A stretch of DNA of 63,894 nt, filler included, from Octopus bimaculoides (taxonomy: Eukaryota), in assembly GCF_001194135.2 (NCBI RefSeq). It is 4 parts of 4 records of this genome, joined end to end, with 100 filler letters (N's around TTAATTAATTAA, not from the genome) between each part and the next. Parts side by side here need not be neighbours in the genome. Positions count along the whole stretch, not along the records: positions 1 to 31,420 come from NC_068982.1; 3 more parts are not named here. One strand, given 5' to 3'. Shown here piece after piece: positions 4,058 to 30,208 of this stretch. The translations under genes and the position numbers were made by a program. Below the pieces are notes generated by a model. The model worked only from the letters and a program-made list of their open reading frames with translations, was not told the origin of the DNA and ran no database searches. The number at the start of each line of letters is the position of its first letter. The stretch's first letter is position 1.

Positions 4058-4109
4058 GTGAGTGATGCATTTATCGTATGGTTGATAAGTAAAATAACTA
4101 CTTTTTATA

Positions 4110-4529
4110 CATTATTTACATTTGACGGATATTTTTGTCCTCATCTTGTTTGTTTTTAGCACAACGTTTCGGCTGATATACCCTCCAGCCTTCATCAGGT
4201 GTCCTGGGGAAATTTCGAACCTGGGTCTCATTCCTAAGGTATTTTTCGATGTTATTATTATTATTATTATTTAGGCCAGTGCCTGGAATCGAACTCGGAA
4301 TCTTGCGGTTAGTAGCCTGCGCTCTTAACCCTTACGCCATATGCCCATAATAACAATAACAACATCGAAAAATATCTTAGGAATGAGAAGCCAGGTTCGA
4401 AATTTCCCCAGGACACCTGAAAAAGGCTGGAGAGTATATCAGCCGAAAGTTTGTGTTAACAACGAACAAGATGCGGACAAATATTCGTCAAATGTAAATA
4501 ATTCCTCCTCTCTCAAATACAGAACTGTA
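4110..4529. mobile_element. SINE family C inverted pair: full minus copy 4110-4346, headless plus copy 4347-4529
   Basis: tRNA-like head with A/B boxes, (AAT)n linker and hammerhead-like tail; homologous to the other family C loci. Confidence 0.85.
4158..4203 (-). ncRNA. Predicted minimal hammerhead ribozyme, one stem I mismatch
   Basis: GACAC-CTGATGA-A-GGCTG...CAGCC-GAAACGTT-GTGCT. Confidence 0.6.
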
Positions 4530-4621
4530 TTAAGTATTTCTTATGTTTTCAACTTTTCCTGACTTCGTTAAAAGATTATAATCACATGCTTAGTCATCTA
4601 TGTGATGCTTTTAATCTATTA

Positions 4622-5231
4622 CAGGGATGGGGAACCTGCGGCCTTATGGCCGCATGCGACCTTCTGGGTCAACAATTGCAGGCTATTAACTCCAAGATTC
4701 TGTGTTCGATTCCAGGCACTGGCCTAGATAATAATGATAATAATAATAATAACAACAACAACATCGAAAAATACCTTAGGAATGAGAACCCAGGTTCGAA
4801 ATTCACTGAGAAAACAGTTGACAGATGTGCATTTAGAGGACCAATTGATACTAAGAACCACTGTGTTAGAACCTGATATCAAAATGCTTTCTCAAAAAAG
4901 CAAACTCAAAGAAGTCATTAATTTGAATAAAGAGTAAATACAAGCCTAAAGGAAATATTTCAAAATTTCATATTCTTGGTGTTTATAAGGTTGACTTTTT
5001 TTTAAAAAAAAGATTATTATTCATTTACTTATTAAAAAAAAGTTCCTACTTAAGTAAAATATTTGAAAATGTCATATTTCTAATTTTTATTCACCTGTCT
5101 TTTTTTATGAGATTACTATTAATTTACTTAACAGCCTAAGCCTAGGGATAAAATGACAAAAGAATATTTGTTCTATGAGGTGCGATGAATTGTAAGGTGG
5201 CCTCCATGAACAAAAAGGTTCCCCACCTCTC
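4622..5231. mobile_element. hAT-type MITE containing a nested family C fragment (~4681-4805)
   Basis: Imperfect TIRs CAGGGATGGGGAACCT / AGGTTCCCCACCTCTC; exact 8-bp TSD ATCTATTA at 4614-4621 and 5232-5239. Confidence 0.85.
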
Positions 5232-7380
5232 ATCTATTATTTTAACTTACTTCACAATAGAATGAATAGAGAGATAGACGAATGTTAACGTGTTTATTGT
5301 TAAATAAATATAGAATCAGAGACGATGTTTCAATAGAGAACTACAGGTAGTTGTGAGCTTTTGTGGTGGACGCATTCCGTAGTTATGAGAATGTTGGAGA
5401 GAGAGAGAGAGAGAAATACGAGCTGATCGTGTTGCAGGTCTTCGTATTTTACAAGTCAGTCAAAACAAACAGTTGATGGCCGAATAGCGACTGGCATAAA
5501 ACACCAAGCGGCATTTTAATCTCTTCTCTGCTCTACTTGACGCTGTTGCTTTGCTGAGTGGGTTTATATTTAACTCGACTGATACACAATCAACACTGCT
5601 AAGTGTTTCGTTGGTTCTTTTACATTTGGCTGCCAATTTCAATTTCCGTTTGAATTGATTTCATATTAAGTATAATTATACACTTTTTTAGGCTAACCAA
5701 TACTATGAAAATCATTTTCGTTATAAATCAATAAATAAAGAGTTATTAGCTATTAAAGTTTGAAAATTTGGAGTAACGTTAGTCGATCGTAATCCACAGA
5801 CACATTGATAGCCAAACATGAGAACTCTTTTGTCTACGAGAAAGCACGTGTTAATAAATATATTGAAATCACTTGTTGACGCTGTGTTCTACTGTTTTAC
5901 CCTACCGAATGCTGAAATGTTTGTTTGTTTTTTAATATTTAATTTGTAATGTGTTGTTTATCGCATTAAATAAATATTGAATGCTTAAAACTACAGACGT
6001 CATCATTTGAGTTTGAGAAACAAATAATAGTCATCCCCCACCTTATGTCAATGAATTTAACAGGTATTTGTTGAATGCCATCAATTACGTTTTTGTTTCA
6101 TTTTAAGGGGAGAAGGTGCCATCAATTTGATGCACTCAGATTGTTTATCACAAATCTTATCAATTGGAAATAGCAAGATCGAGACTTGTCCCATTACATC
6201 CACTGCACAAAGCTGGTTACATTACAACGAAGACAACCAAGCTATGAGTGTACCATGCTGTGCAACGGATGCTAACAGATTCTGCAGAGAAATGGTGTCT
6301 ACATAATTAATGATAACACTAACGTTGTGTTTGATATGCTTTGGTCAGCCTGAGGCTGTAGTAGAGACTACTTGCTAAAAGGTGCTATGCAGTGGGATTG
6401 AACTCAGAACTATGTGGTTAGAAAGTATACTGCTAACCACATAGCCACGCCTGTGGCTAATTTTTTTTTTTTTTTGTTATATAAAAACCTATTATTCGTT
6501 TTCATGTTTTTAAAGTTGTTTTATGAATTTTATGACGGCTTTAATTTAAGAATATCTTTTATTGACAGCTTCTACTGCAATCTTCTTGTCATCTAATGCA
6601 ACTAATTTTTTAAAATAGCTCATAATATAAAATACCAACCAGTCATCACTTCCTATCTCAAAGGAAAAATAATTAGAAAAAATATAGATCCTAGCAGTAA
6701 AGATTATATGAAAGCCGAGGAAGAGTTGTCTTAAACAATAGAAATTTTCAGTCAATCATTCATGAATGGCAGCAACTTCGAATGAAGGCTATGTTCTTGT
6801 AGCATGATAATAGTATCTCCTTCATTAAGCAGTGATGTGTATAAATACAAACTTTCGACCAGTTCAAATATGCTTCGAGCATATACGAACTTATAATACA
6901 GCCATTGCCTGTATTTTTGCTATGATGAAATGCTTGCTTAGTGTTGTCACCCCATACTTTATTTATAGTGAGCCACTGAATAGCACAACCAATCATTGAA
7001 CGATGACAGGAATATCATAAGAGGAACACTCATGTCAGTTCACAGTATCTGCCTTTCTAGTCTCTGCTGCTGAAGAGGGGATAAGCACTCCAAAATGCAT
7101 GCACCTAGCAGTCTGGTTAGGGAACACTGTGACTGATTAGGTGTATTTACACCTATTTGTTGGCATCAAAACATTTTCTCCGTGACTAAATACAATCAAT
7201 GGTTTTCTTATGCATTCGAATATGCCTCATATTTGAACTGGAAGCAAATTTATATTTATTAATTAGAATCGTATGCTTTGATCTATGCCCATTCCCTTGT
7301 TAAAAGTTTTTCTAGCTATTTGTTGTTCTAAGCATACTTAGATCGCAAATTTCAACAGCAAGCATCATTATTATTAAATT

Positions 7381-7597
7381 TAAGGCGGCGAGCTGGTAGA
7401 ATCGTTAGCACGCCGAACGAAATGCTTAGCGGTATTTTGTCTGCCGCTACGTTCTGAGTTCAAATTCCGCCAAGGTCGATTCTGTCTTTCATCCTTTCGG
7501 AGTCGATTAAATTTAAATAAGTACCAGTTACGCATTGGGGTGGATGTAATCGACTTAATCCCCTACCCCAAGCTGCCCTTGTGGCAAAAATTTGAAA

Positions 7598-7600
<3 letters not shown>
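7381..7600 (+). mobile_element. SINE family B
   Basis: TAAGGCGGCGAGCTGG head, GAGTTCAAATTCC B box, shared core, (ATT)n tail. Confidence 0.85.
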
Positions 7601-7634
<34 letters not shown>

Positions 7635-7685
7635 ATTGTCCAAATTAATTTCTGATAATAATGTAAACTCACTCTATTCTCACAG

Positions 7686-7733
7686 GTAAACCACAACTTA
7701 CGACAGCGATATCATATGCCACTAAACCACCAG
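7686..7733 (+). CDS. SCO-spondin-like micro-exon: Pro/Thr linker
   Basis: ctcaCAG acceptor, g|GTtggt donor; 48 nt, phase 1-1. KPQLTTAISYATKPP. Confidence 0.65.
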
Positions 7734-7896
7734 GTTGGTAAATATTCATAAACTTTTCAAGAAAACTAGATTTAATAAGGAAGTATTAGTATTACTTTAA
7801 ACACCATAACAGGATAGTTTTATCGTGCATCTATTACTTGCTAATTCTATAGATTTACAATCCCAGAGATCTATATTATGGTGAATGCTTTATACG

Positions 7897-8065
7897 TAAG
7901 GCGACGAGTTGGCAGAAACGTTAGCACGCCGGGCGAAATACTTAGCGGTATTTCGTCTGTCTTTACGTTCTGAGTTCAGATTCCGCCGAGGTCGACTTTG
8001 CCTCTGATCCTTTCGGGATCGATAAATTAAGTACCAGTTTAGGGCCTTGTGCCTAGAGTAGAAAA
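7897..8065 (+). mobile_element. SINE family B
   Basis: Same head and core as 7381-7600. Confidence 0.8.
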
Positions 8066-10010
8066 GGGTATATGTTTTTGATATTATTTAGCAGAAGCAA
8101 CAGAGTGACCCAAGGACTGAGAGTTTCGTGTATTAGCACTTGTTTCGTGTATTAGCCACTCCTGTGCCCGAAAATTGTGTGAGATGCTTACAGCACCTAG
8201 GTTTCCCAAGCGGTCATCCATCTAAGTACTAACTGGACTCAACGTTGCTTAATTTCAGTAACTATGCATTATCTCATAGCTTTGAGATTTTGACGATGTG
8301 ATTGTTTATTTGTAAAAGGACACTATAGAGTAGGTATGAAAGGCAAGATCTGGCCTGTTTGAAGATAAAGCAGACAGAATATTTTGGCCGGATATGGCTG
8401 GCTTTAAATGCTAAGGAGTTAAATAAATTTCACTCCCTCAAGCTTAAATGATTATATAAAATGAAGAACATTCACCTGTGAAACCACCATGAAGCCTGTG
8501 AGACTACAAAAGCCAAAGGTTGGGGTAGCTTTATGCTAGGAGATGAGGTTTGAGATATAAATAAAGGGGGACCCAGAGCAGGTTCTTGTTGTAGAGCAGC
8601 GACATGGTTACTCGTATTTACAGGAGAGAGAGTAAGAAGGAATTTAGTCATAGCTGTGATGAGACAAATAGTGGTGTGAGGTGTCCGAGTAGAAGTGAGT
8701 GGGGACAGAGAAAGTAAGGTGAGTGGGTGGAGGCTGGCAAGAATGTATCGGGATTGGTGGGGGGAGCATGGAAAAGAGGATATTAAATGATGGTGATGTA
8801 CTGTTTTTATTGAATATCATTATATGATCCCTAAATTGTAAAGTATTTCAAAAATATTGTTAAAACTAACACTCCATTGGTTATGATGCAGAACAGTGAT
8901 TCGCAACCTGTGGTCCATGGATCCCTGGTAGTCTGCAAAGGTAGTACTGGGGGTCTGTGAAGATGTTAAGCTGACAGACCTTTCAATATCCTGGGGTCCG
9001 TGGAACATGGCAGGCTGGCAGAAATGTTAGCACGCCGGGCGAAATGCACCATAGAAACCAGGAAACCGGGCCCATGAGCGTGGCTAGGTTTTAAAAGGGC
9101 GCATAAATAAATAATTACATACTGGCACGGATTGGACGGTTTGACAGGAGCAGATCAGTTGGAGAGCTACTCCATCCTCCACTTATCTGTTTTGGCATGG
9201 TTTCTACAGTTGGATGCCCTTCCTAACACCAATCACTTTACAGAGTATATTGGGTGCATTTTATGTGGCCCTAGCATAATTTCTCTTTATATGGCACCAG
9301 CAAGGGTGGCTTTTAAGTGGCACCAACACCTGTGAACTCATAAGACAAGGACCTCTCAGCTGGGAGAGAGGGTATGGATCTGAGAGATTAGAGTATGATA
9401 GAGGGAGAGGGATAGCCTCCTTATTATCAAGGAGATACTTGGCTACTTCAGTAGGACAAGGAAGGAGAGGAAGGGGGAGAGAGAGAGTTGTTAGAGAGAG
9501 AAATAGTGAGACAGTAGGGATGAGAAAGAGAGGGAGAGAGAGTGAGAGAAAGGAAGAGCCTGTACACAGGGAATACTGAGGGTTGTATAAGTTGTACAGA
9601 CAGGATGGAGTGTGAGGGGAGATATTTAGAGATGACAGTGATAGCAAGTGATATTGAAAGATATTGGAGAGGCTGTAGAGATAGCAAGTGATGTTGTGCT
9701 AATTAGAGTTCTTGTAGAGATTTACCACACTGAAATAAGTACTAAAATGAGGAATGAAGTCCCCCCCCCCCCAGCATAGCCATGGGTATAGACCAGGGAA
9801 AGAATAAAATAACTTATGTTATACTTCCACTTAAAAAGATATTTCTGGCTTCTGGTTTATGTGTAAATACACTGTTATTGCTCAGCTCTTTGTCTACAAT
9901 TTTCGTTATACAAACCAACAAGAGAGTATTATTCCATGGTCACTTGCTCTGCTAGACATAGAAACTAAATCCTCTTCAAAATATAATATCTTTCTGACTT
10001 TTATTTCTAG

Positions 10011-10747: not shown

Positions 10748-10906
10748 GATGTGCTTATTCAACATGGTCTCAATGGACAGCATGCAGTAAGGGCTGTGAT
10801 GTAGGGAATCGAATAAGATCAAGAAAGAGACTGATAAAAAAGGGAACAGCTGATTGCAATTTACCAACAGAAGAGACATCTGATTGTAACTTCATTCCAT
10901 GTGAAG
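10748..10906 (+). CDS. SCO-spondin-like exon: TSP1 repeat 1
   Basis: CAYSTWSQWTACSKGCDVGNRIRSR...CNFIPCE; canonical splice sites, phase 1-1. Confidence 0.92.
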
Positions 10907-11900: not shown

Positions 11901-12074
11901 AATCACCTTCATGGATGCCTTGGGCAACTTGGGAAAGTTGTTCAGCATCATGTGATGTTGGATACCAGAGAAGAACTCGAAAATGTCAAAATAAACTTGA
12001 AGTAATATCTGAATGTCTTGGAGTAGGAGTGCAAATCCAAGCATGTGGATTGGAAAGGTGTTCAAATGAACGAG
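11901..12074 (+). CDS. SCO-spondin-like exon: TSP1 repeat 2
   Basis: WMPWATWESCSASCDVGYQRRTRKC...ACGLERC; canonical splice sites, phase 1-1. Confidence 0.93.
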
Positions 12075-12191: not shown

Positions 12192-12495
12192 TCATCATCA
12201 TCATCGTCGTCGTTTAACGTCCGCTTTCCATGCTAGCATGGGTTGGATGATTTGACTGAGGACTGGCGAACCAGATGGCTGCACCAGGCTCCAATCTAAT
12301 CTGGCAGAATTTCTACAGCTGGATGCCCTTCTTAACGCCAACCACTCCAAGAGTGTAGTGGGTGCTTTTACGTGCCACTGGCACAAGGGCCAGTCAGGCG
12401 GGTACTGGCAACAGCCACGCTAGAAATGGTATATTTTACGTATCACCTGCACAGGAGACAGTCCTTCGGCACTGGCAACGATCTTGCTCGAATGT
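12192..12495 (-). mobile_element. Repeat family D (SINE-like, AGGAAGGGCATCCAGC core, (GAT)n tail)
   Basis: GGAAAGCGGACGTTAAACGATGATG 3' end; near-identical copies across the window. Confidence 0.85.
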
Positions 12496-13244: not shown

Positions 13245-13287
<43 letters not shown>

Positions 13288-13365
13288 ACGATGGGCTTCT
13301 CTCAGTTTCTGTCTACCAAATCCACTTGCAAGGCTTCGGTTGGACTGATGATATAGTGAAGACAC

Positions 13366-13571
13366 TTACTCTTTTACTTGTTTCAGTCATTTGAATGTGT
13401 CCATGCTGGAGCACCGCCTTTAATCGAGCAAATCGACCCCAGGACTTATTCTTTGTAAGCCTAGTACTTATTCTATCGGTCTCTTTTGCCAAACTGCTAA
13501 GTTACGGGGACGTTAACACACCAACATCGGTTGTCAAGTGATGTTGGGGGGACAAACACAGACACACAAAC

Positions 13572-13606
<35 letters not shown>

Positions 13607-13774
13607 CATATATACGACGAGCTTCTTTCAGTTTCCGTCTACCAAATCCACTCACAAGGCTTTGGTCAGCCCGAGGCTATAGTAGAAGGCATTTGCCCAC
13701 GGGGCCTAACAGTGGGACTGAACTCTGAGTCATGTGATTGGTAAGCAAGCTACTTACCACACAGCCACTCCTAC
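13366..13774 (-). mobile_element. tRNA-derived SINE family A (CORE-like body, internal microsatellite)
   Basis: GGAGTGGCTGTGTGGTAAG head and GAAACAAGTAAAAGAG tail on the minus strand. Confidence 0.85.
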
Positions 13775-14015: not shown

Positions 14016-14262
14016 TGTGCACTGGAGGTAAAGTTTGGTCTGACTGCGCAAATGAATGTCCACTTCATTGTGCAGACTACAAAGCTGGAAGGGGTGTATG
14101 CCAGGAATCAGATACGTGTGTCCCTGGATGTCGATGTCCTGAGAACACCCTTGAACAGGATGGAAAGTGTGTAAAGAAAGAACAATGTTTTTGCCACGAT
14201 AAATATGGAACTGCTGTACTGGAAAATTTTGAAACTTCATCACATGCAATTTGTGAGAAATG
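14016..14262 (+). CDS. SCO-spondin-like exon: TIL domain 1 plus start of TILa/VWC-like module
   Basis: CTGGKVWSDCANECPLHCADY...CVPGCRCPENTLEQDGKCVKKEQCFC; phase 1 to 2. Confidence 0.93.
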
Positions 14263-15913: not shown

Positions 15914-16098
15914 TCAGCATTATCATCATCATCATCATTATCATCATTTAACATCTGTCTTCCACGCTGGCATGGGTTGGACAGTTTGACTGGGGCTGGC
16001 CAGGCAGAGAGTTGCACTGAGCTCCACTGTCTCTTTTGGCTTGGTTTTCTTACAGTTTAATACCCTTCCTAATGCCAACCATTTACACACGTGCACAG

Positions 16099-16150
<52 letters not shown>

Positions 16151-16949
16151 TCATATACACATAATGCATTCACAGAAAGGGAATAATGGAGCCATCATAT
16201 ATGCATATCGAACTCTGCTTAGAATTTCCTCATTATAACACTTACTTCCTTCTTGGTTTGCAAATATAGACATAATATTCCCATTCATCTCAACCCATAA
16301 TGCTGGGTTGAATAAAACCAATAGTAAAGTCCTATAGTACATTGTACAGCAATGAAACAAATCACAATTAACAATCCAGTAATTTAATATTTGAACAAGC
16401 TGCTTATAAATTGTTAAATATGAAAATTGGTCAGTTTACTTTTGCCACTAGCATCAATGGGTTTATAAACAGTGGGTTCATGAATAGTTAAGGAAGATAC
16501 ACAGCTGATGATGATATCTCCAAGTGGAGTTGAAATATGCATGTACAGTTGTTCCTTCTCGGTCTGTCCATGAATGTATTGTGTGTGCCGCCATAATGCT
16601 TACGTTTTTCAAATGCAGTGTTGGCTAAAAATCTCTAGATATGTTCTAGTATATTCTACAACAAAGTAATTGCAAGCCATGCTCTCTTTCTCTCTTAATG
16701 TGTTTGTAAAGAAGATAGTTGAAACTTATTCATTCTGCTCTTGAGAGTAAGTCCTGGAATTTAACCACCAGATTAGTTTGTGGAGCAAAGACAAATATAT
16801 GCTTATCAAATGTACACAAATTTTGTCTCAATCATCATCATCATCATCATCATCGTTTAACGTCCGCTTTCCATGCTAGCATGGGTTGGACAATCATGGT
16901 GCTAATTAATTAGTGTACACTACATGTAGTATACACTTATTAATTCATA

Positions 16950-17197
16950 ATTTAACGTCTGCTTTCCATGCTAGCATGGGTTGGACGATTTGACTGGGGT
17001 CTGGGAAGCCAGAAGGCTACACCCTCCAATCTGATTTTGCAGAGTTTCTACAGCTGGATGCCCTTCCTAACGCCAACCACTCCGAGAGTGTAGTGGGTGC
17101 TTTTTACGTGCCACCGGCATGAGGGTCAGTCTGGTGGTACTGGCAATGGTCACACTCAAATGGTGTTTTTTACGTGCCACCTGCACAGGAGTCAGCC
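16950..17197 (-). mobile_element. Repeat family D flanked by a ~30-bp direct repeat
   Basis: Flanks 16915-16945 and 17198-17227 are near-identical. Confidence 0.8.
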
Positions 17198-18312: not shown

Positions 18313-18740
18313 AAGCTGTGGATGTGTGATAAACAGCTTGCTTCTCGACCACATGGTTCCAAGTTTTGTCCCACTGTGTGACACCTTGGACAAGTGTCTT
18401 CACTGTATCATCATGCCAACCAAAGCCTTGCAAGTGGATTTGGTAGACAGGAACTGAAAGAAGTCCAACATATTGTGTCTCTTTGTGTGTATATGTATGC
18501 GCATGCATGTATGTGTGATTGTGTATATGCATGTGTGTGTCTTTATGTCTGTGTTTGTCCCCCACCACCACCACTGCTTGACAACCAGTGTTGGTATATC
18601 TATGTCCTCATAACTTAGTGGTTCAGCAAAAAGAGATTGATAGAAAAGTACTGGAGTTGATTCGTTTGACTAAAAATCCTTTAAGGCACTGCCCCAGAAT
18701 GGCCACAGCCTAACGACTGAAACAGTTAAAAAGATAAGAG
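18313..18740 (+). mobile_element. SINE family A (diverged)
   Basis: Collinear with 25397-25770. Confidence 0.75.
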
Positions 18741-19069: not shown

Positions 19070-19607
19070 CATTATTTACATTATTTACATTCGACGGATA
19101 TTTGTCCTCATCTTGTTTGTTGTTAACACAACGTTTCGGTTGATATACCCTCCAGCCTTCATCAGGTGTCTTGGGAAAATTTCAAACCTGGGTTCTCATT
19201 CCTAAGGTATTTTTCCATGTTGTTGTTGTTGTTGTTGTTGTTGTTCAGGCCACTGCTTGGAATCGAACTCGGAATCTTGGGGTTAGTAGCCTTCACTCTT
19301 AACCACTACGCTATATGCCCATGCATGCATATGGTATAGTGGTTAAGAGTGTGGGCTACAAACCCCAAGATTCCAGGTTCAGTTCCAAGCAGTGACCTGA
19401 ATAATAATAACAATAATAATAATAACAACAACAACATTGAAAAATACCTTAGGAATGAGAACCCAGGTTCGAAATTTCCCCAAGACATCTGAAGAAGGCT
19501 GGAGGGTTTATCAGCCAAAACGTGTTAACAACAAACAAGATGAGGACAAATATCCGCTAAATGTAAATAATGTACAGAATTCCTCATCTCTTAAATACAG
19601 AACTGTA
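19070..19607. mobile_element. SINE family C head-to-head inverted dimer: minus 19070-19320, plus ~19327-19607
   Basis: Two near-complete copies in opposite orientation with heads about 6 nt apart. Confidence 0.88.
19125..19170 (-). ncRNA. Predicted minimal hammerhead ribozyme, one stem II mismatch
   Basis: GACAC-CTGATGA-A-GGCTG...CAACC-GAAACGTT-GTGTT. Confidence 0.6.
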
Positions 19608-20248
19608 TAGAGCACTCCACAGACATGCCGACCCTTAATATAGTCCTCAGGGAGATTCACTGACACAGAGTGTGACAAGGCTGGCCCCTTTGAATTACAG
19701 GTACAACTCATTTTTGCCAGCTGAGTGGACTGGAGCAACATGAAATAAAGTGTCTTGCTCAAGGACACCAATGCACCACTGAGTATTGAACTTGTGACCT
19801 TAAAATCAAAAGTCAAATACCCTAACCACTAAGCCATGCACCTTCACAGATGTCACTATGTGTCTTATTTAAATAAAACTAAGCCCCTATATTTAAAATT
19901 TACTGAATGCTACAAACAATGTGGAAGACTTGAACTAAAAAACACGAAAGTATTTTAGTTCAGTGTTTTAGCTTTGAAAAACTATTAAAATAAATATACT
20001 TTAAACCCATGGTTAGTCAACTGAGTATAGCTGGCTCAACCAGAGAAACAAAATTCCTTGCAAGAGGAACAAGAATCATCTTATGTATTCTGTTTACCTT
20101 TGTAGCTTCATGATGAGCACAGCACTATTAGAACTGACATTTGCTTTAATCACTTCATTTTATCAAGTATCTTTTTAACCTGAATAAGTCACAATAGAAA
20201 TGTTTCTTAGTAGTTTACAGTAAATTTATTATATCCTTTATGTTCTAG

Positions 20249-21019: not shown

Positions 21020-21190
21020 CTGATGGAAAATGGGCAAGTTGGTCTGAGTGGGGACCTTGCAGCCATTCATGCCAGCCTGGTGGAATCAGAATAAGAACTC
21101 GCTCTTGCTCAAATCCTTTACCACGCTGTGGGGGAAAAGTATGTTCAGGAAACGCTGTTGATTATGAATACTGTACAATGAAGAAGACAT
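21020..21190 (+). CDS. SCO-spondin-like exon: TSP1 repeat 4
   Basis: DGKWASWSEWGPCSHSCQPGGIRIRTRSCSNPLPRCGGKVCSG; phase 1-1. Confidence 0.95.
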
Positions 21191-21669
21191 GTAAGTAATT
21201 TATGATACTGTGGTATTTCAAATCTACCTTAGGAGTACATTAATTCCCAGCATCTCTGAAATACTGTTTGCATTTAAGTCTTGAAGTTCTCTCATACTTT
21301 CCTCTTCACTTCACATAACATGCTTATTATTCACATCACCCAATGGATTCCTGCTTCAGTTTCACCCAGCTTAATAATGGCATTGTTGGCAGTGCCATTT
21401 CTCTTATCTCAGCCTATATGTCTTGCTTCCTGAAACAAATTGATATATCTGACACTATTTTGTCATTCTAGTTGATTAATTGTCGTACATCAGCTCCAAT
21501 AAAGCAAATATATCATGCAGGTGATCAGTCAAACAACTAAATACATTCTACATATCAAACTCTTTAGATATATTGTTCTTCTGCCTAATTAAAACTGAAG
21601 CCATGTATTTCAGTTTTCATTGCACAAGGTACATTGTGGTATCTGTGTCTTTACATTTCTTCTACAATC

Positions 21670-21923
21670 CGTAGTGCTTAAGAGCATGGGATACTGACCC
21701 CAAGATTCCAAGTTTGATTCCAGGCAGTGACCTGAATAATAATAATAACATCAAAAATACCTTAGGAATAAGAACCCAAGTTCGGAATTTCCCCAAGACA
21801 CTTGATGAAGGCTGGAAGGTATATCAGCTGAAATGTTGTATTAACAACAAACAAAATGAGGACAAATATCCATCAAATGTAAATAATGTACATAATTCTT
21901 CATCTCTTAAATATAGAACTGTA
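21670..21923 (+). mobile_element. SINE family C single copy
   Basis: Slightly 5'-clipped tRNA-like head through terminal AAATATAGAACTGTA; ribozyme core mutated (TTGATGA). Confidence 0.85.
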
Positions 21924-22138
21924 TAATCCAGTCTTTTATTCTTTATTTATAGATTTCATTGTTTGCTATCCAGGAATCAAATGAGGTAAAATAGTTCCAG
22001 AATTGCTCTCAAGAGTTTTGGTCGTATAGAATAAGCATATTCCATTGCAATACATTCCGTGGTGATATATCTACAATTTTGCATTACTTTATTTGGATAT
22101 TTAAAACAACAGGCATTTTTGTTTTCTCCATGTTGCAG

Positions 22139-22291
22139 GCTGTATTTATGAAGAATGGTCAATGTGGTCAACATGCAGCAAACCATGTGGTAAAGGTTTT
22201 CAGATCAGTGAACGAATTAAAACTAGGGATTCATCTTGCAAATTAAATACTAAGACTAGAAGACAAACTTGTCGAGTACAGCCTTGCAGAG
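22139..22291 (+). CDS. SCO-spondin-like exon: TSP1 repeat 5
   Basis: CIYEEWSMWSTCSKPCGKGFQISER...CRVQPCR; phase 1-1. Confidence 0.93.
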
Positions 22292-23048: not shown

Positions 23049-24794
23049 CAGTAGATCCCGCGTTATAAATCCATTGATAATAAATCTACCCGCTTGATGT
23101 ATCAAAAATGGGTTGGAATGGAATTTTTACACATAAAATCTCTCATTTAATAAATCCAAACCATCACTTAATAAATCCAACTGTTGCTGCTTCTTCCTAA
23201 AGTGTCACCAAGCAAATGAATCAAGTGTTCCCCCCCCCCCCCATTAAATGCTGACAGGTAGGCTCCAGCAGCCACGGTCAGCCAGCTGTCATGTGGTACA
23301 CTCTATCATCCCAAAATAGATATAGTGTATATATATAAATACACATACACTACCATTTACCATTACCAACAGGGTCACGACTACTACTACAACCAACAAA
23401 AAATGCTCCCACCTGGACTGTTGACACCAGTAAAACAATTATGAACTTTTCGTTTAATTTCATTTTTTTTAAATATGTATTTTTGATAAGGTTCGTTTTT
23501 TCAAGAACCGAAACATGTTAAAAATATCTCTGACAAAATTATAAATTAAAATTCATTTTTTTATATTTATTTATTTATTTATTTATGTGTTTCAGCCAAG
23601 TGGCTGCGGTCATGCTGGTGCACATTGACGTTTTCAAACTTCTTTTTTATAAATATATATGTTTTCCTGTCTTGGTTTTTGTCCGCCACTACATTCCTCC
23701 ATGGTAAGATTTAATTTGCGTATACAAATTTAATCTGCAGTCCATGGGAAGAGCTGTTTTAACGATGCGTCCCGCCCAGCTCTTCGAAACGCTGGTGTTA
23801 AAACGGGGGTAGCTGATGAAGTAGAATGTTCTCTATGTGGCTTGTGTGTTTTCTCGTCTACGTTTTGTTTGCAATGTCCTGTACCCAGATATGCACCTAT
23901 ACATACAGGTGGATGTCGGTATGCACATACCTGTACGTATATATGCATATACTCATTTATTATTTGTTTTTATATATATATATGTATATATAGTAGCTGG
24001 CAGTGGCTGCTGGAGCCTAAAACACATCCTTGTCATTCAAGTGAAAAAGTAGGCTCCAGGACACCTCTTGTCAAAATTACATGCCCTTCTCATTTATTGG
24101 ATGATGGAGTGTACCATGTGACAGCTGGTTGGTTGTGGCTACTGGAGCCTACCTGTCAGTATTGAAGTGTGAAAAAACACATCATTTGTCATTCATGTAG
24201 AGAGGCAGACACACACACACAAGTTGTTCAAAATGAAATATGAGAAGCAGGACCAATCCATGGTAGAAAAGATTCAATTGTTAGGATGTTACAAAGCTGA
24301 ACGTTAGAATGATGGTGCTGTTGTTTGCTCCAGGGATCATCACTGAAGAAGGAAAACTAGACGAGATCGTTCATGACAATTGGCAATCTGAAAAGGAAAC
24401 CGAAGGAGATGAAGATGGCAATTCCATCATTGATGTTGAGGAAAGAGCTCCAGAGCCTCCAACGTCAGCTGAAATGAGACACTATCTCATTCGATTAGAA
24501 AGTGGCCTTGAAAGTTTTGATTTCGGTGACATGAATCCTTTTAGAACTCTTTTGGAAAAAATCAATGCAGAGTTGCAAACGAAGCGTCCAACAAAGCAAA
24601 CAACACTCAACAAATTTCTCATTCAAGGACCCTGTTTATAATGCTTTTTATTCTTGTATTCGCATATTATATGTATTTTAATAAATACACATGTTTAATC
24701 AATCAACAAATTTTCTTCCCTCGGTTAATAAATCCCTCGTTTAATAAATCCAAAATAGGTGGTCCAAGATGGATTTATAAAGTAGGGTCTACTG
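23049..24794 (+). mobile_element. pogo/Tigger-like DNA transposon deletion derivative with foreign inserts
   Basis: TIRs CAGTAGATCCCGCGTTATAAATCC / GGATTTATAAAGTAGGGTCTACTG with TA on both sides. 24309-24641 encodes an acidic C-terminus ending KQTTLNKF, typical of Tigger-type transposases. Confidence 0.8.
23780..23990. repeat. Dispersed repeat shared with 56743-56935
   Basis: GGGGGTAGCTGATGAAG...CCAGATATGCACC...CTCATTTATTATTTGTTTT occurs at both loci. Confidence 0.8.
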
Positions 24795-25106: not shown

Positions 25107-25262
25107 TGAGATGTGGTAGATGGACAAGGTGGTCACCTTGTGTGGGTCAGTGTGACAAAGGAGTCAGCAAAAGAACTTTTAGAGTTTCCACGAGACGAAG
25201 AAATAAGTCTGTCTGCAAGACTCAAACGGAAGAAAGGGAATGCAAACTGGCCAAAAAATGCA
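25107..25262 (+). CDS. SCO-spondin-like exon: TSP1 repeat 6
   Basis: CGRWTRWSPCVGQCDKGVSKRTFR...ERECKLAKKC; phase 1-1. Confidence 0.92.
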
Positions 25263-25396: not shown

Positions 25397-25770
25397 GCAC
25401 AGGAGTGGCTGTGTGGTAAGTAGCTTGCTTACCAACCACATGGTTCCGGGTTCAGTCCCACTGCATGGCACCTTGGGCAAGTGTCTTCTACTATAGCCTC
25501 AGGCCAACCAAAGCCTTGTGAGTGGATTTGGTAGACGGAAACTGAAAGAAGCCCGTCGTATATATGTATATATGTGTGTTTGTCCCCCCAACATCACTTG
25601 ACAACTAATGATGATGTGTTTATGTCCCTGTAACTTAGCGGTTCGGAAAAAGAAACCAATAGAATAAGTACTAGGTTTACAAAGAATAAGTCCTGGGGTT
25701 GATTTGCTCGACTAAATGCGGTGCTCCAGCATGGCCGCAGTCAAATGACTGAAACAAGTAAAAGAGTAAG
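25397..25770 (+). mobile_element. SINE family A
   Basis: A box TGGCTGTGTGG, B box GGTTCAGTCC, GGCACCTTGGGCAAGTGTC body, GTAAAAGAG tail. Confidence 0.88.
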
Positions 25771-26608
25771 TGGCTGAGGACTCCACAGACCTATGTACCC
25801 TTAAAGTAGTTTCCAGAGAGATTCAGCACGATACAGAATGCAACAAGGCTGGCCATTTTAATTACAGGTATGACTCAATTTTGCTGGCAGAATGGATTGG
25901 AGCAACGTGAAACAAAGTGTCTTGCTCAAGGACACAATGCACTGCTAGAAATAAAACTCTCACCTTACAACCATGAGCTGAACCCCAACCACTAAGTCAG
26001 TTATTGTGTTACAATAAGCAGACCCATGATCTGAAGATACCTATCTCCTCTCCAAGCATGGCTGACCAATGTTAAGCATGCTTTGAGAAACTTATCCACA
26101 CTCTGATAGGTTTTATTTTAAATCCTAGTAAAAGTAAGGGATTGAAAAACCTTCAACCACCTGAGATTATCCAGGCAATAAAGAGATAAAAACTACCTCC
26201 AAAGGAGTTTAAAACAAGCAAGGAAGATAACTCTAACAAGATCAGTTGATCAAAAGTTTTGGAGAAAATAGAAAATGCAGTACAGAGTGGAATTGATCTG
26301 GTCTTTAAAGTTAGCTGGTAAAAGTAACAGATATGTTTTGGTTTTAGTTGACCTTACAAATGAATCATGTTTGACTCAGAAAGCATAAAGAGTGATCAAT
26401 ATATATTTCTTTGTCTGTTTTTTCTGTGCTAGCATGTTTACATGTTTATTTACATGTTTACATGTTTACATGTTTATTAGTGAGGCATTGTTTTGCAGCC
26501 AGATGCCTTTTCTGTCAATAACACCGTTGTTCAAGTAAACAATATCTTATTTTCATTATTTACATTATTTACATTTGACGGATGTTTGTCCTCATCTTGT
26601 TTGTTGTT

Positions 26609-26654
26609 AACACAACGTTTCGGCTGATTTACTCTCCAGCCTTCATCAGGTGTC
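26609..26654 (-). ncRNA. Predicted minimal type I hammerhead ribozyme
   Basis: GACAC-CTGATGA-A-GGCTG[gagagtaaat]CAGCC-GAAA-CG-T-T-GTGTT: intact core, ACGT palindrome. Confidence 0.72.
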
Positions 26655-26948
26655 TTGGGAAAATTTCGAACCTGGGTTCTCAATCCTAAGGTATTTTTCG
26701 ATGTTATTGTTGTTATTATTAGTGTTCAGGTCACTGCTTGGAATCAAACTTGGAATCTTGGGGTTAGTAGCCCGTGCTCTTAACCACTATGCCACATGCC
26801 CACTATGACGTAGTGGTTAAGAGCATGGGCTACTAAATTCAAGATTCCGAGTTTGATTCCAAGCAGTGACCTGAACACTAATGATAATAATAATAATAAC
26901 ATCGGAAAATGCCTGAGGAATGAGAACCCAGGTTCAAAATTTCCCCAA

Positions 26949-26994
26949 AACACCTGATGAAGGCTGGAGGTTATATCAGCCGAAATGTTGTGTT
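26949..26994 (+). ncRNA. Predicted minimal type I hammerhead ribozyme
   Basis: AACAC-CTGATGA-A-GGCTG[gaggttatat]CAGCC-GAAA-TG-T-T-GTGTT: stem I AACAC/GTGTT, stem II GGCTG/CAGCC, near-palindromic helix III. Activity untested. Confidence 0.7.
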
Positions 26995-27239
26995 AACAAC
27001 AAACAAGATGAGGACAAATATCCGTCAAATGTAAATAATGTAAATAATGCACATAATTCCTCATCTCTTAGATGTAGAACTGTATAGAGAACTGGTTTGG
27101 TTGGATGGGAGTCTGATGGTAGCAATGGAGCAGATAGAAATACAATTACACAAAACCAAGTTAATGCTGATGATACAAGATATAGTAACTGTTACTTTTT
27201 ATCTTGGCACACAGACTGACATCGCCAGATTTCTACTTA

Positions 27240-27610
27240 ATGTGCTGACACGTAAAAGGCACCATTCGAGCATTGTGCCTAACTGGCACCCATGCTAGTG
27301 ACATGTAAAAAGTACCATTCGAGTGTGACCGATGCCAGAGCCACCTGACTGGCACCTGTGCTGGTGGCACATAAAAAGCATTGTTTGAGTGTGGCCGATG
27401 CCAGTGCTGCATGGCAGGCACCCATGCCAGTGGCACGTAAAAAGCACCCACTACACTTTTGGAGTGGTTGGTGTTAGGAAGGGCATCCAGCTGTAGAAAC
27501 CTTGCCGGATCAGACTGGAGCCTGGTGCAGCCTTCTGCTTTGCCAGTCCTCTGTCAAACCGTCCAACCCATGCCAGCATGGAAAGCGGACGTTAAACAAT
27601 GATGATGATA
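27240..27610 (+). mobile_element. Repeat family D
   Basis: Core plus (GAT)n tail; internal repeated GGCACGTAAAAAGCACC-like units. Confidence 0.8.
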
Positions 27611-27691: not shown

Positions 27692-27897
27692 CATGTGGTG
27701 AAGGAGAAATATGGTCAACTGAGCCAGTATGTGATAACACATGCAACAATGTTTTCGGACCTATGAATAATTCCTTATGTAAGGCACCACAGAAAGGCTG
27801 TAAATGCAAAAAGAACTTATTTAGAGACTCAACAGGCAAATGTGTTCCAAGACAAAATTGCAGTGAATTTTGTTTTGCTGATGGTTTAATAAAACAG
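27692..27897 (+). CDS. SCO-spondin-like exon: TIL domain 2
   Basis: CGEGEIWSTEPVCDNTCNN...GCKCKKNLFRDSTGKCVPRQNC; phase 1 to 0. Confidence 0.92.
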
Positions 27898-28574: not shown

Positions 28575-29670
28575 AGATGCCAGCATGGCCCTGTGGTAAG
28601 AAGTTTGTTTCCCAACCACATGGTTCTGGTTTCAGTCCCACTACATGAAATATTTTACAAATGTCTTCTACTATGGCCTTAGACTGACCAAAGCCACATG
28701 AGTGGATTTGGTAGGCAGAAACTGAAGGGCAGTCAGCTGGCAGAAACGTTAGCACACCTGGCGAAATGCTTAGCCATATTTCGTCTGACTTTATGTTCTG
28801 AGTTCAAATTCCGCTGAGGTCGACTTTGCCTTTCATCCTTTCAGGGTCGATAAATTAAGTACCAGTTACACACTGGGGTCGATGTAATCAACTTAACCCC
28901 TTTGTCTGTTCTTGTTTGTCCCCTCTATGTTTAGCCCCTTGTGGGCAATAAAGGAATAAGAAACTGAGAGAAGCATGGCCGCTGTCAAATGACTGAAAGA
29001 AATAAAAGAATAAAATAATGTGTGTGTGTGGGTGAGTCTCTGGGTGTGTGTGTGTGTGTGGGTGAGTCTCTGGGTGTGTGTGTTTGTGTGTGTGTGTGCA
29101 TCTTTCTGTTTGTGTTTACCCACCCACCCACTGCTTGATTATTTGTGTCAGTGTGTTTAGGTCCCTGTAACAGAGCAGTTAGGCAAAAGAAACAATAGAA
29201 TAAATACCAGAATAGGCTTAATATAAAAAAGTACTGGGGTCGATTCATTCAAGTAAAATTCTTCAAGGTAGTGCCCCAGCATGGCCACAGTTTAATGACT
29301 GAAACAAATAACAGATAAAAGAGATCTGGAGGCACAAGGCTTGAAATTTTGGGGCAGGGGTTAAGTCAATTACATCGACCCCCCCAGTACTTAATTTATC
29401 AATCCTAAAAGGATGAAAGGTGAAGTCAACCTTGGCAGAATTTGAACTCAAAACAAAGCGGTAGATGAAATACCGCTAAGCATTTCACCTGGTGTGCTAA
29501 TGATTCTTTTCTACTTTAGGCACAAGGCCCAAAATTTTGAGGGAGGGGGCCAGTCAATTAGATCGACCCCAGTGTGTAACTGGTACTTAATTTATCGACC
29601 CCGAAAGGATGAAAGGCACAGTCGACCTTGGTGGAGTTTGAACTCAGAACACAGCAGCAGACAAAATACC
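28575..29670. mobile_element. Nested SINE cluster: family A split by a plus family B copy (~28731-28965), then two minus family B copies (~29330-29665)
   Basis: Family A head at ~28580 resumes after the B insert at ~28965; tandem minus B copies follow. Confidence 0.7.
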
Positions 29671-30208
29671 ACTTTAGCTTCAAATAATTTGAAGCATGGA
29701 ACTGTGAATAGAATATAGATTACTTTTTACAGATTTTCTATAGAAACTAAAATCAACACTAAAAGTTTTGCCATTTCGTAGATAAAAAAATAGGTAATTT
29801 GCATATTTGAGGAGTTGTTACTGCAGGTGTGTTTATAGCAACAGGTGTGAGAGCAGGACTTCATAGTGGAGCACACTTAATCTGTTTAAGAAGTCAGAAA
29901 TGTTGTGAGATGAAGTGCTTCTTAGTTTTGAAGAGAAGAACCACTTTTTGAGATGCAATCATAACTATGTTAAGGATATTCTTACACTAGGAGAGATCTA
30001 ATATTTGATTCAATCACAAATGCTCTTCTATTTATTAATTTCCTTAACCTTGTATTAATTATTGTTTATACTGCTGACAGCTTTAATTATAAATTTTCTT
30101 CTAAACATTTTACTAAGGCTAATACTATAACTTGATAATTCCCAACAATAGCTATACTTTCCTTTGATACATTTAACTATTCCATAATTTCTAAGTGAAT
30201 CGTATGAA

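Follow-up and report, generated by a model that had tools for sequence, protein, structure and literature searches.

The window analysed here is a stretch of 63,894 nucleotides (filler included) from Octopus bimaculoides (assembly GCF_001194135.2), in which positions 1 to 31,420, the part to which all window coordinates, counts and searches below refer, come from NC_068982.1. This part looks to lie within a gene of alternating thrombospondin type 1 (TSP1) and TIL domains, SCO-spondin-like in character (Pfam TSP_1, E=1e-22; TIL, E=5e-7), and it carries several copies of a ~280-nt repeat that joins a tRNA-like head to a hammerhead ribozyme motif of the minimal kind described from Penelope-like elements (PLEs). 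An earlier reading of this DNA, hereafter the original prediction, had taken one such copy, at 26804-27084, for a short interspersed nuclear element (SINE) with an RNA polymerase III (Pol III) head and a Penelope-derived self-cleaving tail. Here we delimit the family, describe the arrangement of its copies and propose, with a probability of roughly 65%, that it is a non-autonomous, tRNA-headed SINE of octopus mobilised by PLEs.

Scanning with the hammerhead pattern of the original prediction (CTGATGAAGGCTG-N10-CAGCCGAAA, at most three mismatches) located seven sites in the window, at 4167(-), 4417(+), 19134(-), 19489(+), 21802(+), 26618(-) and 26954(+), against none expected from shuffled sequence, and a profile built from the copies (nhmmer) recovered the same seven copies plus a head-and-body fragment at 4677-4809. 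These eight pieces, all within 31 kb, make up 1909 bp (6.1% of that length), and aligned copies are 85-91% identical to one another. The family consensus, ~241 nt without and ~281 nt with a 3' tail, comprises in 5' to 3' order a ~75-nt head, a (TAA/CAA)n linker, a 49-nt body, a 46-nt hammerhead motif, a 51-nt AC-rich segment and an optional 40-nt tail. Judged by the copies in the window and those in Octopus sinensis and Octopus vulgaris, the element is short, non-coding, dispersed and high in copy number, as befits a SINE.

The modules can be followed along the copy first noticed, which occupies 26804-27089(+), slightly more than originally delimited, lacks ~6 nt at its 5' end and retains the tail (profile positions 4-274, E=2e-89). 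An A-box-like motif, TGACGTAGTGG (26806-26816; consensus TGGCGTAGTGG), and a B-box-like motif, GAGTTTGATTCC (26849-26860; consensus GAGTTCGATTCC), both placed from the sequence, the consensus and an exact-string check, are followed by the linker (26876-26899), which had been read as (AAT)n and proves on alignment to be a (TAA/CAA)n stretch of variable length, no two copies being equal in this respect. The body (26900-26948) contains a second B-box-like motif, GGTTCAAAATT (consensus GGTTCGAAATT), and precedes the hammerhead motif (26949-26994), the AC-rich 3' body (26995-27049), which ends in ...(TAAATAATG)2, and the tail (27050-27089), which ends in ...GAACTGTATAGAG; all of these features lie on the plus strand.

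Three of the four window loci are head-to-head inverted pairs, an arrangement missed by the original prediction, in which the heads meet centrally and the 3' ends face outward. Pair 1 consists of a full-length, tail-less inverted arm at 4108-4346(-), whose hammerhead retains its core and has a single mismatch in helix I, and a tailed forward arm at 4347-4534(+) that begins in the linker with 96 nt absent, leaving it headless, and whose hammerhead is dead (G8>A). Both arms of pair 2 are essentially complete and 4 nt apart: the inverted arm at 19070-19322(-) is full length and tail-less with one helix II mismatch in its hammerhead, and the forward arm at 19327-19612(+) has the tail and a hammerhead inactivated by G12>A and a 3-nt deletion. 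In pair 3, the copy described above faces an inverted arm at 26554-26803(-) that is complete at its 5' end (GTGGGCAT...), lacks the tail and has kept its hammerhead intact (26609-26654); the inverted repeat spans 173-nt arms at 26547-26719 and 26884-27056, 91% complementary and 164 nt apart. The fourth locus is a solo, tailed copy at 21670-21926(+), truncated by ~12 nt at its 5' end and carrying a C3>U core change. As for the fragment at 4677-4809(+), which has a partial head, linker and body (profile positions 24-144) and neither hammerhead nor 3' module, we considered and rejected a second head-sharing SINE family: the sequence downstream is unique, and the fragment is therefore simply a truncated copy.

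The central junctions of the three pairs join positions +1/+96, +1/+3 and +1/+7 and, since they differ between loci, each pair arose independently and not as a copy of one palindromic unit. In all four head-to-head loci, that is, the three in the window and one in O. sinensis (locus L001), where an inverted partial head abuts the 5' end of the copy at L001 9838-10157, one or both arms terminate at an identical 5' end, GGGCAT. On this sequence evidence, we read the pairs as having arisen repeatedly, with variable 5' truncation, from an RNA with a defined 5' end. Substitutions exclusive to a pair were not enriched within loci, so sequence comparison gives no proof that a single event produced both arms, and the case for one rests on architecture. 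At 88-91% identity, the arms within a pair are no closer to each other than arms of different pairs.

At their outer ends, the copies stop at one of two distinct 3' termini separated by 40 nt. The three inverted arms share exactly one end point, ...(TAAATAATG)1-2, whereas forward copies run 40 nt further to ...GAACTGTATAGAG, so that the tail is found in 5/5 forward copies (four in the window and the O. sinensis copy) and in 0/3 inverted arms (Fisher p=0.018). The termini lie 51 and 91 nt 3' of the predicted hammerhead cut, in the AC-rich segment, and in the consensus fold a 9-bp stem between AGAUGAGGA of the 3' body and UCCUCAUCU of the tail (window 26995-27068) joins the two and brackets terminus 1. 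At the tail-less terminus, one or two of the 9-nt units TAAATAATG are present, a variation suggestive of slippage as reverse transcription begins. No copy bears poly(A), and no flanking direct repeat of at least 7 nt was found that could be a target-site duplication; the usual 3' end of a SINE that depends on a long interspersed nuclear element (LINE), with its LINE tail, poly(A) or simple repeat and target-site duplications, is not seen here.

The consensus hammerhead motif reads GACAC-CUGAUGA-A-GGCUGG-(8 nt)-UCAGCC-GAAA-CG-U-U/GUGUU, the slash marking the predicted cut after GUU. In the copy at 26949-26994(+), identified by a descriptor scan, helix I is formed by 26949-26953 with 26990-26994, followed by the CUGAUGA core (26954-26960), the extra A (26961), helix II (26962-26967 with 26976-26981), GAAA (26982-26985) and UG-U-U (26986-26989), with the predicted cut between 26989 and 26990. 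Helix I has 5 bp (GACAC/GUGUU) and helix II has 6 bp (GGCUGG/UCAGCC), closed by G10.1-C11.1 and ending in a G-U pair; the unpaired A between A9 and G10.1 is invariant (8/8 copies). There is no helix III that could close within one molecule, only the palindromic A15.1-C-G-U16.1, at which two copies show CpG decayed to UG, a change that leaves G-U pairing possible. Folding predicts a structure with both helices at no more than 0.6 kcal/mol above the minimum free energy. The original prediction is borne out in its core reading, the palindromic ACGT in place of helix III, the GUU site and the extra A after A9, all present in the consensus, and in its claim, confirmed by the scan, that four copies keep both core motifs with at most one stem mismatch; its 5-bp stem II and 10-nt loop have to be redrawn as a 6-bp helix and an 8-nt loop.

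The complete core, CUGANGA...GAAA...UH, is present in the consensus, in 4/7 window copies and in the O. sinensis copy. The motif is perfect at 26949(+) and 26609(-) and carries one helix I mismatch at ~4160(-) and one helix II mismatch at ~19125(-), while the remaining three window copies have the lethal core changes given above. A strict descriptor that demanded the core boxes, G10.1-C11.1, a helix II of at least 4 bp, a palindromic substitute for helix III, UH and a helix I of at least 4 bp was satisfied by 26949-26994(+) and 26609-26654(-) and by no site in 300 dinucleotide shuffles of positions 1 to 31,420 (~19 Mb, both strands); when a 3-bp helix I was accepted, the copy at ~4160(-) and those of O. 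sinensis and O. vulgaris also qualified. Together with a rough analytic estimate for the strict descriptor of ~1e-9 per position and strand, the shuffles make a chance origin within one 280-nt family appear very unlikely. N7, the sole free core position, is the only one that varies in more than one copy (U in five, A in three), a weak hint of constraint.

A second hammerhead-like motif was seen outside the family, at L001 24704-24786 in O. sinensis and, conserved, at L002 27172-27254 in O. vulgaris. It has a 6-bp helix I (CCUAUG/CAUAGG), CUGAAGA, GAAA, a palindromic ACGUGCGU-C and a long irregular helix II; Rfam does not report it at the gathering score, and it may be a chance occurrence.

A Pol III head for the family is likely, judging from its promoter-like motifs. 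The head starts (GT)GGGCATATGGCGTAGTGG, and in the consensus the A box TGGCGTAGTGG sits at +8 from the first G of the shared GGGCAT 5' end, which is the arrangement of tRNA genes, with the B box GAGTTCGATTCC starting 43 nt after the start of the A box; single copies differ from these strings by one or two substitutions. Against the Pol III consensus strings TRGCNNAGTGG (A box) and GGTTCGANNCC (B box), the family matches 11/11 and 10/11 positions, so the consensus has internal A and B boxes at tRNA-like positions, as a tRNA-derived SINE should. The sense strand contains no T4 run that would stop Pol III. The head may resemble the D and anticodon arms of a tRNA-Ser(GCT)-like molecule. The exact A-box string given in the original prediction, TGGCGTAGTGG, is that of the family consensus and occurs unchanged in the O. 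sinensis copy, although nowhere in the window. A different tRNA-like head, with another A/B-box pair (TGGCTTAGTGGTTAGGG...AAGTTCAATAC), lies at window ~19836-19767(-), ~200 bp from pair 2.

Comparison with PLEs was informative for both the motif and the insertions. PLE minimal hammerheads have been characterised by a short helix I (4-5 bp), a long helix II with G10.1-C11.1, an unpaired nucleotide between A9 and G10.1 and a palindromic 15.2-16.2 (Cervera & de la Pena 2014), and the octopus motif, with its CUGANGA and GAAA boxes, 5-bp helix I, 6-bp helix II, unpaired nucleotide and palindromic ACGU, fits all four of the listed sequence features, including ones that our descriptor did not require. 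In PLE minimal hammerheads these features kept recurring even though the original survey had not made them a requirement (Cervera & de la Pena 2014). In Schistosoma, such motifs have been reported in opposite-strand pairs separated by 100-700 bp (Cervera & de la Pena 2014), which is also the octopus arrangement of opposite-strand motifs a few hundred base pairs apart. The octopus motif differs in residing in a ~280-nt unit with a tRNA-like head, not beside an open reading frame (ORF) for reverse transcriptase (RT) and GIY-YIG endonuclease, and in the lack of tandem copies. PLE insertions are strongly 5'-truncated and often have, next to the 5' end, a copy in inverted orientation and, at one end, a tail of 30-40 bp; LINE-type insertion does not show such inverted copies and tails (Craig et al. 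2021). The octopus family displays both an inverted copy directly at the 5' end with variable truncation and a 40-nt tail at one end only, but in the window and the two other octopus loci it does not display the partial tandem, or pseudo-long terminal repeat (pLTR), that is also typical of PLEs.

The biochemistry of the Anolis PLE protein PAc offers a parallel for the two termini. In a 2024 in vitro study, PAc cleaved and extended both DNA strands, with reverse transcription beginning at two internal RNA sites, the first of them an AC-rich stem-loop 85-92 nt 3' of the hammerhead cut; the tail represents the stretch separating the two start sites, and the minimal RNA template begins just upstream of the cut. 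The octopus family shares with PLE insertion and PAc the inverted 5'-abutting copy, the variable truncation, the one-ended tail, two apparent RT starts and a hammerhead upstream of RT entry, and its termini at 51 and 91 nt after the predicted cut resemble the PAc geometry of 85-92 nt. It differs in having neither an ORF nor a pLTR-forming partial tandem, and in that its inverted arm is full length and the forward arm is usually the truncated one.

We propose the following route for this putative PLE-mobilised SINE. Pol III would transcribe a discrete RNA starting at GGGCAU, in keeping with the observed defined 5' end and the lack of an internal T4 run. The 3' module would mimic the pLTR/ORF-junction region of a PLE and be recognised in trans by an RT/GIY-YIG protein, whose endonuclease would cut both strands, each 3'-OH then priming reverse transcription at one of two internal sites of a SINE RNA, by analogy with PAc. 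Such two-ended priming would produce inverted pairs whose arms are free to use different start sites; the converging cDNAs would join at the ends corresponding to the RNA 5' end, giving the head-to-head pairs, variable truncation and one-arm tail that are observed.

The hammerhead was most likely inherited with the captured PLE-derived module. As a monomer without helix III, it could at best cleave through dimers mediated by ACGU, and dimerisation over four base pairs would be weak; PLE minimal hammerheads are known to cleave poorly in vitro, even as dimers (Cervera & de la Pena 2014). Efficient cleavage would also part the promoter head from the RT-entry module, a problem related to a drawback of cleavage noted for the Schistosoma element Sm-alpha, and it follows that the predicted ribozyme is probably of low activity, subject to regulation or vestigial. 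Neither the window nor the two other octopus loci contain a copy that starts at the predicted cut site. In the SINE, the motif is thus probably either weakly or conditionally active or a tolerated relic.

A number of results weigh against this proposal. Rfam hammerhead models, one of the checks suggested with the original prediction, gave no match at the gathering score or at E<=10 on positions 1 to 31,420, on 26520-27110 or on the best-preserved copy of O. sinensis, the shorter searches being made with lengths of 591 and 401 nt; a blank is expected, because the motif lacks helix III, and we still count it as a failed test. The suggested covariation check on stems I and II likewise came back empty, with no compensatory changes in 11 pairs, though in a sample of only eight closely related copies, in which 93% of pair cells are paired; PLE minimal hammerhead families are rich in covariation. 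Nor does the core stand out above its flanks, as the original prediction had demanded: divergence from the consensus is 6.9% for the hammerhead against 9.3% for the head, 5.0% for the body, 3.1% for the 3' segment, the best-conserved region, and 6.2% for the tail. We do not take the lack of covariation and of excess conservation as refutation, because dispersed SINE copies decay neutrally and the consensus mirrors the source genes; the dead copies are what is expected of neutrally decaying retroposons, say little about those genes and lend no positive support. In the head, ARAGORN found no tRNA gene in the window or the consensus, and the Rfam tRNA model gave no match at E<=10 on the sequences searched for hammerheads, so that of the predicted tRNA head the boxes and the position of the 5' end hold up and the tRNA models do not. 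Head-to-tail tandem or pLTR-like arrangements are absent from the window and the two octopus loci, which counts against the proposal because tandem dimers are the form in which PLE hammerheads are supposed to work. In vitro, catalytic mutants of the PAc hammerhead insert normally (2024 study), and the sample comprises only four head-to-head loci, a small size that we also count on the negative side.

The search for a PLE partner adds to these points. Pfam, run on those open six-frame segments of the window that reach 45 aa, recognised no RT or GIY-YIG domain, only the TSP1 and TIL domains of the host, and the long ORFs (130 aa or more) of the two octopus loci, assessed by eye only, look like LINE RT/endonuclease and Helitron-type helicase, not PLE. 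A composite six-frame SINE query of proteins revealed no PLE ORF starting in the frame of the ATG embedded in the hammerhead, a LINE RT protein query returned no octopus proteins, and two metagenome scans, with the hammerhead and with the 3' body, gave 0 matches. The 3' module matched only its own family in 114 kb of octopus DNA that includes CR1-like and RTE-like LINE copies; the LINE-derived tail that had been named among the findings that would refute the original prediction is not seen there, and neither is a PLE partner. The published repeat annotation of O. vulgaris lists ~30 recently active Penelope families, which makes a PLE partner in an octopus genome plausible, and puts a burst of SINEs and LINEs at a Jukes-Cantor distance of 0.065, close to the 5-7% by which our copies diverge from their consensus. 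Overall, the Pol III-headed element with a Penelope-derived tail, as originally predicted, is partly supported: its structural reading is strengthened by the hammerhead features and PLE-type scars, and its self-cleavage and tRNA origin stay putative.

Three other explanations deserve consideration. An ordinary tRNA-derived SINE dependent on a LINE, whose hammerhead is a relic or coincidence and whose pairs stem from snap-back or template switching during LINE-type reverse transcription, would be unsurprising in a genome group where SINEs, mostly unclassified, occupy ~11.6% of O. vulgaris and LINEs are the usual SINE partners. It would gain from the lack of covariation or excess conservation in the hammerhead and from the tail-less terminus, whose (TAAATAATG)1-2 end is superficially like the short repeats in which some LINE clades terminate and, with its 9-nt unit occurring once or twice, is reminiscent of stringent-type LINE ends, a likeness that also tells against PLE mobilisation; moreover, the O. 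sinensis inverted arm, of head and linker only, fits snap-back better than two-ended priming. Yet there is neither poly(A) nor target-site duplication, the 3' module is unmatched among the CR1-like and RTE-like copies, and a chance hammerhead is very unlikely and would not account for PLE-specific features beyond the descriptor. Snap-back would not be expected to end 3/3 inverted arms at an identical nucleotide, and the 40-nt extension, which is part of the element because five copies have it in common, is strictly tied to arm orientation. We therefore consider LINE mobilisation unlikely. A shade less probable still is a short non-autonomous PLE derivative, akin to a solo pLTR or a retrozyme, that is no Pol III SINE at all, its boxes being fortuitous and its transcription due to read-through or Pol II. 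Most dispersed minimal hammerheads were earlier read as truncated PLEs and PLE pLTRs contain promoters, while ARAGORN and the Rfam tRNA model remain blank even on the consensus or best-preserved copy and neither the T arm nor the 3' strand of the acceptor stem can be folded by eye. Such a derivative would leave unexplained the 11/11 and 10/11 box matches, the +8 position of the A box with its 43-nt spacing to the B box, the missing T4 run and the GGGCAT arm end in 4/4 head-to-head loci, which points to a discrete ~280-nt RNA and not to random truncations of a 3-4 kb element.

The near-perfect inverted repeats at three loci, each able to form a ~250-bp hairpin, could also suggest a ~540-bp palindromic DNA element of the foldback type, or a miniature inverted-repeat transposable element, with 250-bp terminal inverted repeats. 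We rejected this reading, which is very improbable, on account of the differing central junctions, one of which leaves an arm 96 nt short, and the asymmetric ends, with a tail on a single arm; solo 5'-truncated copies exist, no target-site duplication was found, and arms within pairs are no closer than arms between pairs.

The pairing of a SINE with a PLE-type hammerhead had been thought undescribed, and here the novelty was overstated: SINE-like retroposons with hammerheads have been known since 1998, PLE minimal hammerheads since 2014, retrozymes have been proposed to depend on PLEs, and non-autonomous PLE derivatives are described in Chlamydomonas (Craig et al. 2021). Sm-alpha and Sj-alpha of Schistosoma (Ferbeyre et al. 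1998; Laha et al. 2000; summarised in PMC6765202 and PMC8490949) lack coding capacity, are short and highly repeated, bear a type I hammerhead and are apparently transcribed by Pol III. The octopus family is likewise a short, non-coding, highly repeated retroposon that carries a hammerhead. The Sm-alpha hammerhead is canonical, with a helix III and loop-loop contacts, and is active in vitro, whereas the octopus motif has no helix III and occurs in dispersed inverted pairs with PLE-type tails. Metazoan retrozymes of the non-LTR kind are non-autonomous, hammerhead-bearing elements of 170-400 nt, called SINE-like and proposed to depend on PLEs (Cervera & de la Pena 2020; Li, Clavereau & Pollet 2026 preprint), and are in these respects close to the octopus family. 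Unlike it, they form head-to-tail tandems that give rise to circular RNA, bear classical type I hammerheads and have no described Pol III or tRNA head; in the sequence examined, the octopus copies are solo or inverted, never tandem. With LINE-partnered tRNA-derived SINEs, including those of octopus, the family shares the A/B-box head, the short non-coding body and the very high copy number. The LINE-partnered elements finish with a tail taken from a LINE, bearing poly(A) or short repeats, and are flanked by target-site duplications, in contrast to the octopus family, which lacks such ends and has PLE-type scars. What remains of the earlier claim is that a dispersed SINE headed by tRNA-type boxes, with a PLE-type 3' module and scars, was not found in the open-access literature. 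It is a tentative suggestion, on which we would not insist, that this is the first clear Pol III (tRNA-promoter) SINE to parasitise PLEs and not LINEs, and that its ~140-nt 3' module, made up of minimal hammerhead, AC-rich stem-loop and tail, is the natural minimal cis-signal for a PLE RT.

To our knowledge, all SINE classes borrow their 3' ends from LINE clades, and a SINE that borrows from PLEs would represent a new partner class. It would also offer a compact natural substrate of ~90-140 nt for the choice of template and of two start sites by a telomerase-related PLE RT, and could explain part, perhaps many, of the thousands of dispersed "orphan" minimal hammerheads of animals that have provisionally been ascribed to truncated PLEs. 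It would sharpen the question of why a hammerhead that insertion can do without in vitro is retained in PLE-derived modules. With PLE integration priming at both ends of the DNA, new insertions of the family would come as inverted pairs from the outset, and octopus introns would be sown with 250-bp hairpins of double-stranded RNA in their hundreds or thousands. Octopuses show extensive A-to-I RNA editing, and insertion as pairs would be a systematic source of long intronic hairpins, with possible effects on double-stranded RNA sensing, RNA editing and small-RNA pathways. Each pair (26547-27056, and likewise 4103-4534 and 19070-19612), if transcribed within the host intron, would form a near-perfect hairpin of ~250 bp (-382 kcal/mol, z=-56), and such hairpins could serve as substrates of double-stranded RNA pathways such as A-to-I editing. 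Weak microRNA-like Rfam matches at 26770-26831 are due to the palindromic junction of pair 3.

The host gene is represented on the plus strand of the window by TSP1 exons at 10765-10902, 11912-12061, 21031-21192, 22156-22287 and 25121-25261 and by TIL exons at 14018-14188 and 27694-27861, and three of the four SINE loci fall between detected exons. A word-indexed protein search returned no homologue of the TIL exon. Elsewhere in octopus, a six-frame query with the SINE consensus matched a single protein, the uncharacterized protein LOC115224785 isoform X2 of O. sinensis (XP_029651560.2), whose first 35 residues correspond to SINE sequence that includes the hammerhead and 3' body (92% identity; L001 9959-10157); the SINE there is either an exonised copy or an annotation artefact. 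At the LOC115224785 locus, O. sinensis (L001) and O. vulgaris (L002) share an orthologous full copy with an intact minimal hammerhead, in O. vulgaris at L002 12457-12782, plus a second, truncated copy.

Other features of the window were recorded in passing. A 110-aa ORF at 24309-24641(+), ending ...KRPTKQTTLNKFL, resembles by eye the C-terminus of a pogo/Tigger-type transposase, and Pfam was blank for it. A 5S rRNA-like sequence at 8185-8287(-) scored 30.8 bits, short of the gathering score set by Rfam (38), and may represent a pseudogene or a SINE derived from 5S. The window is dense in SINE-like repeats and TG/TA/CA microsatellites and contains at least three further short interspersed repeat families with direct and inverted copies, one at 1362-1669, 7376-8039, 28729-28962 and 29356-29673, another at 13248-13772, 18319-18511, 25401-25775 and 28586-28726, and a third at 12192-12369, 15926-15995, 16835-17195 and 27349-27609. 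Runs of N at 385-484 and 1470-1479 are assembly gaps, the first of which is adjoined by a TG-rich direct repeat (1-111 versus 266-376, 97% identical).

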